A DNA stretch of 64,000 nucleotides from Fonticula alba ATCC 38817 (GCA_000388065.2 KB932203.1), one strand, 5' to 3'; shown: positions 36,203-42,438, counted from the stretch's first letter. The notes: generated by a model not told the origin, from the letters alone. Numbers and translations: made by a program.

Positions 36203-39200
36203 ATGAAGCTCTTCTTCATCACCACGCTCAACGGGTCATCGATCTACACCCCGCCCTTGGTGCCACCGAGTCTGCATGAGAGCCACGTCAAGACCCTCCG
36301 CTGGCGGCACCTCCGAAGCACAGCCCTGCGGACGATCTCCTCCCTGCAGAAGGTCCGCGTGGAGCCTTCGGCCCAGGGGCTCCGCTGGCCGGTGGAATTC
36401 ACCAATTACCTGTGCTCGCCTCTGAGCGGGACACAACAGTTTTCCTTCGTGCGCAATTGCCCGGCCCCCTTTGCGCGTGCTTTGGGCCCCACGCACATGG
36501 CCGTGAGATCCACCTTCCGCGTGCTGACCGTCGACTTGTCGCCTCCTTCTCTGTACCCCCCTCCCCCCCCCCCCCTCCCCTGCCTGCCCTCTTGGCCTGG
36601 CATTAGGCCACATTCAATCAGCGCATCACCTCCTTCAAATTGACATGTGGCTCGACCATGTGTGTGCTTTTCTACGAGGTGGGCCGGGACTGTACGCTCC
36701 CCCTGTCGAAGGCCGCACGCACGCCGCCCAGCCAGCCGGATGATGACAACCCGGGCGACATGCCCTACCAATTCCCCTCGCTGGTGGCGTACGCCATCAC
36801 CGACTCCAGCGAGCCGCTGGACACCCTGCGCTTCCAGCTACGCATCCTGTGCGATGCGCTGGTCATGCGCTTCGGTCCGCTCGAAACGGTGCGCGACCCC
36901 CCCCCCCCACACACACACCGCCACCACCACCACCACCACCACCACGCGCCTATGGTGCTGGCGTGCATGATGGCCGACGCGCTCCGATTGCCCCGCCCGA
37001 CTGACCCCCAAGCGCCCTCAGTTCATTCCCGAGAACTACATCATCAACGTGCACTTCCAACAGTATCTCAACCCGCTGGTTGATGCCCTTCTGTCGCTCT
37101 CGTCCAGCTACGATGTAGGCCTCCTGCTGGGGTCGGTCAACCGTCTGAAGCTGAGTGATCCCATCGACCAGCAGTGGTACGCCCCTGCCTCCTCCCTCAC
37201 TCGGATCGCTCTCCGATGCTTTGCCGCGCCAAATGCTCCCCCGCCCCACGCTAACTGCATTTGACGGTGTTGCCCCTGCCCAGCCATCAGGCGTTGGAGG
37301 CCGCGGCGCAGGCGGCGTCCAAGCCGTCGGATGCCTTTGCCGGGCTGGTCCGGCCGCCGCGGGTCATGCACCTGCTGCTGTTCATCGGCAACAAGCTGGC
37401 CGGGCACTATGCGGCACCAGGGGCGCCGACGCTCGGCGGGGCGCCCGGGTCATCTGGCACCGGGTCCGGCACCGGAGGCCCGGGCTCCGGGGCCGGTGGG
37501 TCTGGAGCCGGCAACAACCCCGCCCTCAACAGCCGTCTGTCCAAGTCCGAGCGGGCCAAGCTGCTGCAGCTTCTGCAGCACGAGGCCGAGACGCCGGCCT
37601 TCCACCTGTCGCCATCGGACCTGCTGCAACTGACGCTGCGTTTGCAGGCCCGCCGTGCGGCCGCCCGCGCCGAGTGGCGGACCCGCAAGTCCGAGTGGCG
37701 GTCCAGCCTGCAAGCCTTCGAGGCGGAGCTGCGTGCCTTGGCCGCGGCCGAACCGCCGGCCAGCGTGGCCGAGGACCTCTCTCAGTCGAGTTCGCCCGTG
37801 CAGCCGGATGCCGTGTCGCCGGGAGCCGAGGCCGAGGCCGAGGCCGAGGCTGGGGAGTCCTCGGCGCGGGTCGCTCCCGAGGATGATGCGTCGACACCCG
37901 GTGGTGATGGTGACCTGGATGATGCGCCGGCGGGGGATGGCGACTTGGCGCCTCTTCCGGTGGACCCGGTTCCCCCGGCGGAGCCGGTTCATCCCTACAC
38001 GGAGCTGATCGAGTGCACGACGCCGGCCGCCCGGGCCGAGCTGGTCCAGCAGTACTGGAGCCCGGATGTGTCGGAGAGCCTTTTCCTGCGGACGTCGGCC
38101 CCCTTCGGGGAGATTGCGCCCGGCGGTGCCCCCGGCGGCCGGCGGCCCTTCCGTGTGCATAGCGGTCTGCTGCGGTCTTCGCAGTATCAGGTCCAGGGGC
38201 CCGATGGGCCGGCCATCACATACATCGCCGTGACCGAGGTGCCCATCCGGAGCCGGTCTTCGCAGCACAGCCTCGCCCCGGCGGCCCCGCTCTCGGCCGA
38301 GGAGCTGGACAAGGTGGACGCCGTGGTCACCCGGCGCGTGCATAACAGCCTCCTGGAGTCGCTGGCCCCGATCTTGGATATCCTTTTTGTCCTGAGCCTG
38401 GCACACATGCGCGTCAAGTCCTTCGTGGCCCTGTGCCCGGGGCTGGTGCACTTTGCCCTGGTTGATCGGAGCAGCGGGTGGATGGTGGTCCCGCGGGTGG
38501 AGCAGCTGACCTCCTACGACGGGGGCCCGGGCGAGGGGTCGAGCAACCACTCGGCCGCGGTGCCCTCCTCCGGGGGGGACGGCGATGCCGGTGCCGGTGC
38601 CGACGGCCGGCCGGCCAGCCCGCCGGACGGGGACGACTACTTCGACCTGGACTCGCCGCAATTCGGCGATGGGGCGGCTGTCCGCTCGACGCTGGACCTG
38701 CTGCGGCAGCATTGCGACCGGCGGCGCATCTCCCGGCGTCTGGCGGACTCGATCTACCACGCGCGCGCGCGCATCGCCGAGGGCTATACATCGGGCATCG
38801 CGCGCGTCGGGCCGTACCAGTACTTTCACAATGTGTGGTTCGAGGCGCCGCAGCCCAACGGCACGTCGGAGATGTGCGTCTCTTTCCCCGCCCCATGTGC
38901 TCCCTCCTCCCCCTCGGGGGAGGGGAGGGGGCTCCGCTGTGCATGTGCACTCACACGAATGGCTCCCTCTGCTCCCTGTCGCGGCTTCTCCCCCCCCCCC
39001 CCCCCCCCCCCCTTTCTGCTTCCACAGCCTGCCCATCGAGCAGGCCCTCCCCCAGCCTAGCCGTCTGAATGACCACTTTGATTACTTCCGGTGCGGGGCC
39101 CCCTTCGCTATGCTCCCTCCTCTTTTGGATGCACCCTGCTCACCTGCCGTTTTTTCCCCCGCGTGCACGTGTGTGCGTGTGGCCATGTGTATTCGCGCGC

Positions 39201-39555
39201 GGCCAGCTCCTTCGTGCCGCCGATCATCTTCCCGGAGCTACATTCGGCGGCGGCGACGACGCCGGTGTCAGCCGAGTCCTCCTCCTCCAGTGGGTCCTTG
39301 TCGGATTCCCTGTCCAACCTGTCCTTGAGCAAGCCGCGGTCGCTCTTCTCCTTCGCCTCCTCGGCGCCAGCCAGCCAGCGCGCCGACAACGGGCTCCCCC
39401 TGATCCAGGGCCGGACCGGGTGTGTGACGCCGGTCAAGTGCTTGGAGATCTACACCGTCTTTGTGGGGACCCTGCCAGAGCATGAGGTCATCTCGCAGAC
39501 GCGTCGACTGGTCAAGCGCCTGCGCGAAACGGAGAGTGACAAGATCTTCATCTGA
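36203..39555 (+). CDS. HPS1: HPS1 (BLOC-3 tri-longin subunit) homolog
   Basis: HLLLFIGNKLAGHY...LSPSDLLQL, CPGLVHFALVDRSSGWMVVP, YFHNVWFE and KCLEIYTVFVGTLP..VISQTRRLVKRL parallel the HPS1 motifs I recall. Confidence 0.8.
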
Positions 39556-40250
39556 CCACGATGCGCGGCCACTGGGCGCCTCCCCACTTTGTCCTCTTTC
39601 GCACAGTGCCCCATTCTCCTGGATGGCGAGGGGGCAGGGGGAGGTCGAAAGAATACACGCGTATTGCCAAGCGCAGTGGGCAGCCACTCCTTGTTTTGTT
39701 CACACACATCGCGCGTGGAGAGGGGGGGGGGGGGGAGGTTGGGGCGGCGAAGGGTCGCGTCCCCCCCCCCCCACATGAAGGTGGACACCGAGAAACCGAG
39801 AACCAGTTGTTTTTTTTCCCTTGGCACAATCGATGTGTCCCGCGCGCGTGTTGAGAAGAAGGCCCGCCACCACACGACACACACTCCCCCTTCCCCTGGT
39901 GCCAGGAGAGGAATCGCCTCTGATGGGCGGCACGCGAAGTTGCCCAGCCCCCCCACTGCCCGAGGCCGCCCACCCCCACACGCACGCATTCCACAGCAAT
40001 ATACCGCAAAAACAAATCAAGAGAGGGGAATGGGAAAGGCGAAAGGGGGTCATCTATTGAGGGAGGAGGAAAAGGTGTCCGCCGCGGGTGTCTTCGCTCC
40101 AGGAGGAGACCTAAAAAAGGCCACATAGGTATGTGTTGCTCCATTTCCCATGCTGCGAGGCGACAGGGGCCTAAAAAGGAGGAGGGGAGGAAATGTCAGA
40201 AGAGGAAGGCAGAAAGGAGAGAGAGGGGGAGAAGCGCCGAGAAGGAGGAG

Positions 40251-40327
40251 AGGTGCTTCAGTTACCGTCATAGCTAAAAGCTATTATCATAGATAATCAG
40301 CGACGATTGTGTCATCAAAAGACACCT
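40251..40327 (-). ncRNA. Box C/D snoRNA, snR79-like (18S Cm1007 guide)
   Basis: Terminal stem AGGTG/CACCT, box C TGATGA (40317-40312), D' CTGA, C' ATGATA, box D CTGA (40261-40258). Guide CUAUGACGGUA is complementary to conserved 18S UACCGUCGUAG (one G-U pair). Confidence 0.85.
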
Positions 40328-40761
40328 CACTCTCTTGTTGGCACTTGCCCCGAGGCTGGAGGGGGGGAGACAAGGAGAGACGCACCCAGAGGAGAAGGGG
40401 GAGGAGACACGCATGGGTGCGCGTGTGCACGGGACACAATGGCCGGCCACACGGTGGCATGCACGCCGGCCCACCGGGCAGCATGTGCGACGGGGGGGGG
40501 GAGGCGCAGCATCCACAAGGTATCCACACAGGGGCGCGTGGTCACCGGGTGAAATGAAAAAGAGTACGCCGAAGCCTCGGGTGGTGGGCGGACAGGCCGC
40601 CCCTGGTCCCTCTCATGCGGGGGAGCATGGGGGGAGGGGCGCGCGCGCACACACTCACGGGCAGCAGCGTCTTCAAGGGGCGGAGAGAGAGAGAAGCAGG
40701 GGTGGACATGTCAGAATGGGCAAGGGAGGGGGAAAGGGAGAAGGGAGGGAGGAGGAGCATT

Positions 40762-40858
40762 TCGCTACCCTCATGGAGATTGGTAGGCTCCCAGTGGCAA
40801 AACTGGCACCTATCACCGGACATCATCGTCTAATTAAAGGTAATCAAAGGAAAAGCGA
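40762..40858 (-). ncRNA. Box C/D snoRNA candidate with variant boxes (C TGATTA / D ATGA)
   Basis: Terminal stems TCGCT/AGCGA and CCT/GGG, D' ATGA, C' GTGATA and an internal hairpin. The 3' end lies 91 nt from a branch point/polypyrimidine/AG 3' splice site. Confidence 0.6.
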
Positions 40859-40980
40859 GCTGGCTCGAGGGGGGGGGGAAAGGAGAGGAGAGGGAGATAC
40901 GAACATCTTGTCGGGATGGCGGAAAAGCCAGGTGAACTTGTCCCTCGGGTCTCGATGTCCCCGGGCTCCGGGCGGTCCCC

Positions 40981-40987
40981 TTTTATA
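40981..40987 (-). promoter_or_regulatory. TATA box (TATAAAA) upstream of the snoRNA host transcript
   Basis: Canonical TATAAAAG in otherwise GC-rich DNA, about 85 nt upstream of the first donor. Confidence 0.5.
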
Positions 40988-41304
40988 CCTCTCTTGCCCG
41001 TGTGCGGCGGGATCCCCCGGTGGCGACGCCGATGCCTCGATTCCGGCCAGCACATGGGGCACGGATGCCACCCGCCGCTGCTGTCGGCGGAGACGACCAT
41101 ACCTCGCCGCCCGCGCCCCTCCACACCCACTGCGCAGGGTGTACGAGGGGGGGGGGGCGAGAGTTCCGGCGAAAAAGGGTCGGCTCGTGGGCAGCTCGCC
41201 GGACCGGGGATGCTTCCAGCTCGCCGACGGACCTGTTTTCCGTCGGAAGAAGAAGATGCTATATAGTCGGTGGGGAGTGGGGGTGTGGCATGGGCGACTG
41301 CCCG

Positions 41305-41305
<1 letters not shown>

Positions 41306-41398
<93 letters not shown>
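41306..41398 (+). repeat. (CA)n microsatellite, about 46 units
   Basis: Perfect dinucleotide run, directly visible. Confidence 0.97.
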
Positions 41399-41400
<2 letters not shown>

Positions 41401-42438
41401 CTAACACGCTCACACGGGGGGCGGATATGCGCACCCCCTGGCCTACACATGCGGGGATGGCCGGGCCTCTCGTCCGGCTGGCCCCCCTCGTGCAACAGGA
41501 AGGGAGTGACCCACCACTTTCCTTGCTGCCCGGGGCACGACCAAGCAAACAGGGTGGGTGCCACAACCCTGCACCATCGGCGGGCGGAATCGCGTTCCCT
41601 TTGGGGTATTTTAAACAACATTCTCGTCCCTCCGTGGCCCCACATCACCCTATTCGTGGTCGTGTGATCATGCGGGCAGGCGACCGCCGCGATGTCTCCG
41701 AGCAGGGCGGCAGGCGGGCGTATGCCAGCCGCACAAGACCAGCACGCTGGTGGGCGGGCACCGAGCGGAACTTGCCCGCCCCTCGGACGGAGGGGGGGGG
41801 GGGGGGGGGGAGGGCGGGGCCTATGCAGCTACACCCCAACAAGAAAGCCCAGGGCAGCCCAGTGGATGTTCTCCTGTTCGATGAGAGAACGGGCGGGAGC
41901 CGGCTGCTGGGCAGAAAACAATGCGCCAGGCTGCAGGGTTCGGGGGAGCAGCCCAACAAAAGAACTACCCTCGGCCGGGGGGGGGGGATCCACGAGAGGA
42001 TGGGGCACTGCCGCGGTGCGCATGGGTAATGTTGGCTCTCTTGACGCCCAGACCAAGAGCTGGACCGAGAGGAAACCCGGCTCTTACAAGGGGGCGTGTG
42101 CCCGGGTCCTCCGTGCCCGGGCCTGCTTCCTCACCAGGTCCCAGCTGATGGAGGGGGGGGGGGGGGGCGGGGGGGAGGAGGCAGGCGGGGAACGGGGGGC
42201 CGGCCCCGCTGGAGGGGCCGGCTCCGCTGGGTTGGTCCTCCTCCTCCCATCCCCTCGGAGGGGCCAGCGGAAGCCAGTGGTCGAGATGGTTTTTGCGCCA
42301 CCGCCGGCAGAAGCCGGGGCCCCTCTGCGCGGGGCGCCTCCCGACACAGCCTGGGTAGACAGTGACTCGCTCTCGCCAACTACTCATCTCCCTCCTCCTC
42401 CTCCTCCTCCCCCTCCTGCTCCTGCTCCTTTGTGCACC

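Follow-up and report, generated by a model that had tools for sequence, protein, structure and literature searches.

A putative small spliced non-coding host gene with two intronic box C/D-type guide RNAs in Fonticula alba

The stretch of Fonticula alba ATCC 38817 DNA analysed here (64,000 nucleotides (nt) of contig 3, GCA_000388065.2, KB932203.1; referred to below as the window) carries on its minus strand, between positions 40987 and 39990, what appears to be a small spliced non-coding host gene for small nucleolar RNAs (snoRNAs), with one rRNA-methylation guide RNA in each of its two predicted introns; judging from the sequence, we give this interpretation a probability of about 0.7. Upstream of the first exon lies a TATA box, TATAAAA (40981-40987), which is the sole copy on either strand of the window (0.19 expected). 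Exon 1 (40901-40957) contains the first ATG (40906-40904), which is followed by TTC; its 5' end is unmapped and was placed some 25-30 nt below the TATA box. Intron 1 (40671-40900, 230 nt) begins with GTATCT, has the branch motif CTGAC at 40714-40710 (branch A at 40711) and ends with the first AG past the branch site (40672-40671). Between this AG and a perfect GTGAGT lies exon 2 (40659-40670), a 12-nt micro-exon, ACGCUGCUGCCC (= ACGCTGCTGCCC). The GTGAGT opens intron 2 (40171-40658, 488 nt), in which CTGAC is found at 40199-40195 (branch A at 40196) and the acceptor, TTTTAG, is again the first AG past the branch site. The last exon, exon 3 (39990-40170), includes the stop codon of the open reading frame (ORF) of the spliced RNA at 40113-40111; no AAUAAA was seen in it, its 3' end is undefined, and 39990 is an arbitrary limit. 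Intron 1 harbours a box C/D-like RNA of ~95 nt with degenerate boxes (sno1, 40763-40857), and intron 2 harbours an RNA with the canonical layout of a box C/D snoRNA of the snR79 type (sno2, 40252-40326). The TATA box, the two introns with the 12-nt exon between them and the CTGAC motifs downstream of both RNAs had been pointed out in the initial annotation of this stretch, and all of these signals are indeed present, at 40987-40981 for the TATA box, 40900-40671 for the first intron and 40171 for the end of the second one.

The 3' parts of the two introns are built alike. Downstream of each RNA come a C/T-rich spacer, then CTGAC, and finally a pyrimidine tract with the first AG, and the distance from the end of box D to the branch A is 60 nt for sno1 and 62 nt for sno2. 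Signals of this kind (CTRAC with its A at 48-62 nt downstream, then at least 75% pyrimidines until the first AG, which has to come within 15-50 nt) are found at 0.18% of the window positions, and the joint chance of two independent sets is ~3e-6 (0.0018 per position). As for the 5' splice signal, the two strands of the window together contain GTGAGT 18 times, and one of these copies is located 12 nt past the first acceptor. If splicing proceeds as predicted, each intron would contain one snoRNA upstream of the branch site, as in host genes of the UHG/GAS5 type. The RNAs had been described as ending 80-91 nt before the 3' splice site; this holds for sno2 (81 nt), whereas the probable end of sno1 at ~40763 is ~92 nt away.

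The RNA in intron 2 contains box C UGAUGA at 40317-40312 (UUGAUGA, 40318-40312), box D' CUGA at 40300-40297, box C' UGAUA at 40289-40285 and box D CUGA at 40261-40258. Its D' guide lies at 40310-40301 (in a first guide region of 11 nt) and its D guide at 40274-40263, and the ends are joined by a terminal stem, GGUG(U)CU / AGCACC, of 6 bp with one bulge (duplex energy -7.9 kcal/mol). The z-score of its fold is -2.1. In a scan of both window strands for UGAUGA, CUGA and a terminal duplex, sno2 was the sole candidate. Note that first-order Markov simulations of the window gave on average 2.4 such candidates, ~7% of them with a guide able to form 10 or more Watson-Crick pairs at some place in rRNA. 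As simulated candidates are this common, box geometry alone is not decisive for sno2, and it is the identity of the target site that carries weight.

The nuclear 18S rRNA and most of the 28S rRNA are not in the assembly, which is a point against our interpretation. (The assembly comprises 31.3 Mb in 214 contigs.) The assembled nuclear rRNA genes (rDNA) consist only of the last part of the large-subunit rRNA (LSU), with a 20-N gap, and of a 5S gene at the end of contig 8 (1854190-1855630); the matches to small-subunit rRNA (SSU) and LSU on contigs 214 and 211 are mitochondrial rRNAs accompanied by tRNA clusters. Guide targets were therefore scored on the rDNA of other eukaryotes. For that, metagenome contigs with rDNA units, foreign to F. 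alba and highly conserved, were fetched with a pattern built on the predicted 18S target, and the bounds of SSU, 5.8S rRNA and LSU were set with Rfam in three of these units (L088, L011 and L030).

In all three units the D guide of sno2, GCUAUGACGGUA, forms 12 bp (10 Watson-Crick, 2 G-U) with UACCGUCGUAGU of the SSU. The target segment is universally conserved, and 106 of 113 metagenome matches read ...GAUACCGUCGUAGU... in this place. The fifth nucleotide upstream of box D (+5) faces the second of the two C in UACC, which is numbered 1012-1016 in the reference SSUs. By its position and its named guide, this C corresponds to yeast Cm1007 and Neurospora crassa Cm1004 (PMC5199042, PMC2780460), a correspondence with the yeast and N. 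crassa numbering that was mapped by inference and not by alignment to the yeast sequence. The complement of the guide is the sole near-match to the 18S motif in the 31 Mb genome, and sno2 is therefore predicted to be the only guide of the snR79 kind in this organism. In its short D' region we found no conserved rRNA target; its AUCGUC is complementary to a GACGAU that immediately precedes the target on the 5' side, but a match of six pairs proves nothing. Among the Rfam covariance models, the best match of sno2 was SNORD105 with 13.9 bits (E = 9), which is below the gathering score. Taken as a whole, sno2 is very probably a real box C/D snoRNA.

Yeast snR79 is an independent gene and not an intronic one. 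It is the guide for Cm1007 of 18S rRNA (PMC5199042), and its N. crassa counterpart, CD18, is intronic and directs the methylation of Cm1004 through its D-box guide (PMC2780460). Like snR79 and CD18, sno2 has a D guide complementary to UACCGUCGUAG that places +5 on the same C, and it shares the intronic location with CD18. Furthermore, the second guide of snR79 is inactive (PMC3116282), in agreement with the short D' guide of sno2 that lacks a conserved target. A match of sno2 to a sequence family was not detectable in Rfam.

Other snoRNA loci of the F. alba genome show how such genes are organized in this organism. A second snoRNA host gene, on contig 1 (L124), encodes snR57, a SNORD33-like RNA and snR61 in three introns with one C/D RNA each, and has the promoter TATAAAAG with a TATA-like CTATAAAAGAGACCC upstream of the host gene. 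Its snR61 (L124:1462-1536) is canonical (RF00476, 51.2 bits). The SNORD33/snR55-like RNA (L124:1764-1834, minus strand; contig 1, ~1829215-1829285) is recognized with 27.5 bits (E = 0.018) and possesses the conserved guide ...CAUGCACUACCAU, i.e. the 18S Um1269-type (snR55) guide. Its box C is AUGAGGA and its box D is CUGC, which makes it the second case of non-consensus boxes in the genome. The contig-1 gene resembles the host gene described here in its TATA-type promoter, its single C/D RNA per intron, its C/T-rich spacers and its first-AG acceptors, and its branch motifs (CTRAC or CTCAC) lie 59-61 nt past box D (61, 61 and 59 nt in the three introns by hand count). It differs in having three introns, longer exons and snoRNAs that are recognized by Rfam.

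A tight spacing rule of 59-62 nt, as these two genes might suggest, had to be dropped, because eleven more loci gave 48-62 nt with outliers of 75 and 88 nt. Indeed, 9 of 11 other intronic C/D RNAs lie 48-61 nt from CTRAC (counted by hand on printed sequences). In the other apparently non-coding hosts, the distances from box D to the branch site are 48, 49, 52, 53, 54 and 59 nt (hand counts in eight further loci, two protein-coding hosts included). From these added loci, the usual range in the genome is therefore ~48-62 nt. It resembles the spacing of ~50 nt that is reportedly optimal for box C/D snoRNAs relative to the branch point of mammalian introns (Hirose and Steitz 2001; Hirose, Shu and Steitz 2003). 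The two outliers are C/D-like elements in introns of apparently protein-coding genes (L136 and L137; contig 1, ~963887 and 2929796), at 75 and 88 nt from the nearest CTAAC, and these distances exceed those of the non-coding hosts. Two further observations concern the branch region itself. The 11-mer CTGACATGTCC is common to the two host genes, being present as the branch region of a snoRNA intron at window positions 40714-40704 and at about 2082-2072 of L124 (minus strand). The 13-mer YTCTGACATGTCC has only 4 copies in the genome. The recurrence may be due to chance or reflect a preferred extended branch site.

On contig 5, another locus (L134; 707300-708800, minus strand) contains at least 4 C/D-like RNAs with C/T-rich spacers and CTRAC...AG signals. 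Only 2 nt separate an acceptor-like CACAG from the next GT in this locus, with micro-exons or several snoRNAs per intron as alternatives. Neighbouring snoRNAs that leave hardly any space for exons, as in L134, would suit a different account of the locus studied here, in which both snoRNAs are real and are released without splicing, either from an unspliced di-cistronic precursor or by transcription of their own, as for most snoRNAs of yeast and plants, with the intron signals being a coincidence. The weak points of the spliced gene, i.e. the unusual length of the 12-nt exon and its unusual AAG acceptor, also speak for this account. However, it would have to attribute to chance both sets of 3' intron signals, whose joint probability is given above, as well as the perfect GTGAGT just 12 nt past the first acceptor; the same layout recurs in the three introns of the contig-1 gene, and no promoter-like element is located directly upstream of either RNA. 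A release without splicing is thus improbable, and we return to the spliced host gene.

The RNA in intron 1 of this predicted host gene is less regular than sno2. Its boxes are, in order, UUGAUUA (40847-40841), AUGAUGU (40826-40820), GUGAUAG (40816-40810), CUGG (40794-40791) and AUGA (40774-40771). Outside of them lies an outer stem (40857-40850 / 40770-40763), and the ends of the RNA pair with each other in the minimum free energy fold (CGCUUUUC with GGGUAGCG). The two guides are located at 40838-40827 and 40808-40797, and a UACCAA is found at 40785-40780. Guide 1, UUUAAUUAGACG|AUGA, pairs with the conserved LSU segment UGUUUAAUUAAA, and guide 2, UGCCAGUUUUGC(CA)|CUGG, pairs with the conserved LSU segment GCAGAACUGGCG, in each case over 12 bp, 10 of which are Watson-Crick pairs. 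Both are antisense elements anchored to a box, at a distance of 0-2 nt from AUGA and CUGG. When the 101-nt core of sno1 was shuffled 300 times, just 5 of the shuffled sequences had at least one guide anchored in this way, as against two guides in sno1 itself.

The guide next to CUGG has the register of the snR61 family: sno1 reads GCCAGUUUUGCCA|CUGG, Dictyostelium DdR13 GCCAGUUUUGCUU|CUGA and the snR61 of the F. alba genome CCAGUUCUGCUU|CUGA, and in the Rfam alignment the guide letters of sno1 fall on the 3' guide and the D box of DdR13. As in snR61/U38/Z1 (RF00476) and DdR13 (RF01563), the antisense element GCCAGUUUUGC stands two nt from the box, and the target that it selects in GC[A]GAACUGG is the same A. 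This A is at +5 from CUGG and has LSU position 1117 in L088 and 1116 in L011; it is the equivalent of 25S Am1133. The N. crassa member of the family, CD38/snR61, is responsible for Am1114 (PMC2780460). Moreover, snR61 makes an extra base-pairing with rRNA (PMC3116282), and the UACCAA of sno1, which can pair with the UUGGUA immediately 5' of the LSU target, could supply extra pairing of this kind. What separates sno1 from the family is its CUGG in place of CUGA, its non-consensus C and D boxes and the silence of the family model on it.

Two other assignments were tried for sno1 and rejected. Guide 1 had been considered as a guide for 18S Um1269 (the snR55 site); by counting along the 18S sequence, however, Um1269 lies in GGUGGUGCAUGG and not in UUGUCUGG. 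The CUGA at 40714 was considered as box D of sno1, with a 10-bp guide to LSU AAUGGGYAAG. In this model 53 nt of pyrimidines would have to be inserted, and the intron would be deprived of its branch site. It is also disfavoured by the 11-mer of the branch region mentioned above, which follows a complete snoRNA in the contig-1 host gene.

On balance, we lean towards the view that sno1 is a genuine RNA of the C/D type whose boxes are degenerate. That it is a working guide with no canonical box at all, in which UUGAUUA and AUGA would form the kink-turn and the snR61-type guide would act from the internal CUGG, 20 nt from the terminal D box, is a tentative proposal and rather doubtful. Several observations weigh against a functional RNA in intron 1, and also against the two-guide host gene. 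CUGA is found in intron 1 only as the branch motif (40714-40711), and sno1 does not have the consensus C (RUGAUGA) and D (CUGA) boxes. The earlier description of a C/D-box RNA in each intron is therefore adequate for sno2, which is canonical, but not for sno1, which has no CUGA between its C-like boxes and the branch site. The snR61 model (RF00476) did not report sno1 at E values up to 10 in the region 40240-40860, and local alignment of sno1 with the snR61 of the genome scored no better than shuffles, which does not show paralogy. The fold of sno1 is unremarkable (z = -0.8). The terminal kink-turn and the spacing to the branch site call for AUGA (40774-40771) as the box, and not for the CUGG beside the snR61-type guide; because CUGG and AUGA are separate boxes, the working architecture of sno1 is ambiguous, and it may be a decaying copy. 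In addition, a canonical snR61 is present elsewhere in the genome, on contig 1. Finally, a Rfam scan of the window and of the locus gave no family at gathering score on sno1 or sno2, and none was convincing even at E = 10.

These observations would be accommodated if sno2 alone were functional and the element in intron 1 were a decaying or non-functional relic, e.g. a snR61-like copy that is redundant with the contig-1 gene, which would leave a host for one snoRNA. The absence of a CUGA D box, the deviation of all boxes from consensus, the failure of the model that gives the contig-1 copy 51 bits to report sno1, its shuffle-level similarity to that copy and its ordinary fold are all in line with a relic. 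Nevertheless, sno1 has two anchored rRNA guides in canonical order, which the shuffles rarely match even for a single guide. Furthermore, UUGAUUA and AUGA, read from the sequence, would retain the U-U and the two sheared G-A pairs of the kink-turn, with U-A in place of G-C; the closing stem of sno1 is present, and its 60 nt to the branch site are those of other snoRNA introns. The SNORD33-like RNA, with AUGAGGA and CUGC, demonstrates that the genome has another snoRNA whose guide is conserved and whose boxes are deviant. We consider the relic unlikely, though it deserves to be kept in mind, and prefer a host gene with two guide RNAs.

The weak Rfam matches obtained in the same scan were artefacts. 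A match to SCARNA2 was due to a long (GT)n microsatellite (window 41185-41421) that lies upstream of the TATA box, and mir matches on both strands were due to G/C runs at 39712-39780. In the latter region, a run of ~13 G opposite a run of ~12 C forms a strong hairpin between convergent gene ends.

The joined exons of the host gene have little to offer for translation. Translated exon by exon, the first AUG opens a frame of 25 codons (MF from exon 1, TLLP from exon 2 and 19 codons from exon 3, then the stop), in accordance with the initial annotation. The minus-strand ORFs of at least 70 codons between 39450 and 41566 have a GC content at third codon positions (GC3) of 0.49-0.72, close to the values at their first and second positions (GC1 and GC2), whereas the neighbouring coding ORF on the plus strand has a GC3 of 0.84 and a GC2 of 0.58. 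No Pfam match was obtained for the minus-strand ORFs of this locus. In its short ORF of 25 codons and the lack of a coding GC3 bias, the predicted transcript resembles a non-coding host. A protein-coding host could be imagined if the 25-residue peptide or a small ORF of exon 3 were translated, or if the exons were the 5' untranslated region of a coding gene downstream; after all, the first AUG does open a frame, and exon 3 has ATG-started ORFs that would extend up to 198 codons if the transcript reached 39548. Such a gene is highly unlikely, as the GC3 of these ORFs stays below the 0.84 of coding DNA and Pfam does not recognize them. Besides, the convergent gene on the plus strand appears, from ORF translation, to end near 39555; if it does, the minus strand would have no space left for coding exons downstream of the non-coding host gene proposed here.

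An ORF of 599 codons on the plus strand (window 37261-39060), which the initial annotation named "HPS1", has clear coding codon bias (GC3 0.84). This name could not be confirmed, as the ORF had no Pfam match (E up to 0.1) and nothing usable was found in the protein atlas.

The initial annotation proposed a dedicated non-coding snoRNA host, and in this it is supported by the promoter and splice signals, the spacing, the lack of a coding signal and sno2, though sno1 turned out to be weaker than it had stated. It also regarded the layout as best known from animals, which overstates the novelty. In N. crassa, 45 of 55 C/D snoRNAs are intronic, and the hosts of five clusters (I-V) are UHG-like with short ORFs only (PMC2780460); comparable hosts occur within the F. 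alba genome itself (L124 and L134). Like the UHG-like clusters of N. crassa and mammalian UHG and GAS5, the gene in the window is predicted to be transcribed by RNA polymerase II, to have short ORFs and one C/D snoRNA per intron, and to possess exons without apparent function. It differs from the N. crassa hosts in having two introns only, a 12-nt internal exon and a non-fungal holomycotan as its owner. Its snoRNA content, a snR79-type RNA together with a snR61-type guide, is not that of the conserved fungal clusters named in PMC2780460.

The following course of events would be consistent with these features. A TATA-driven RNA polymerase II transcript would start at ~40957 on the minus strand, extend to at least ~39990 and lose two GT-AG introns by splicing. 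What is left, the joined exons, has no meaningful ORF and would probably be a disposable by-product. The excised introns would be debranched and trimmed by exonucleases down to the core protected by the assembled small nucleolar ribonucleoprotein (snoRNP), which would define the ends of the two RNAs. The D guide of sno2 would then direct 2'-O-methylation to the cytidine of 18S rRNA that corresponds to yeast Cm1007, i.e. the function of snR79. For sno1, the guide in the snR61/U38 register would be directed at the equivalent of 25S Am1133, and its second guide is complementary to LSU UGUUUAAUUAAA.

Genes of the kind described here have counterparts that are known in fungi and animals; what is new is one more member, in which the degenerate boxes of sno1 are mildly unusual. 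It raises no new question. Its practical value lies in annotation and in a test case for how snoRNA finders perform when boxes are degenerate. For F. alba, a key outgroup of the fungi, an unannotated gene and two guides for rRNA modification would be added to the genome. If sno1 is functional, it and the SNORD33-like RNA, with CUGC as its D box, would imply that the snoRNPs of Fonticula tolerate boxes well outside the rules on which all current snoRNA finders rely. Along with the other hosts of this genome, the gene suggests that non-coding hosts in which every intron has a single snoRNA, ~50-60 nt ahead of the branch site, are not specific to animals, and that this layout probably predates the split between animals and fungi.

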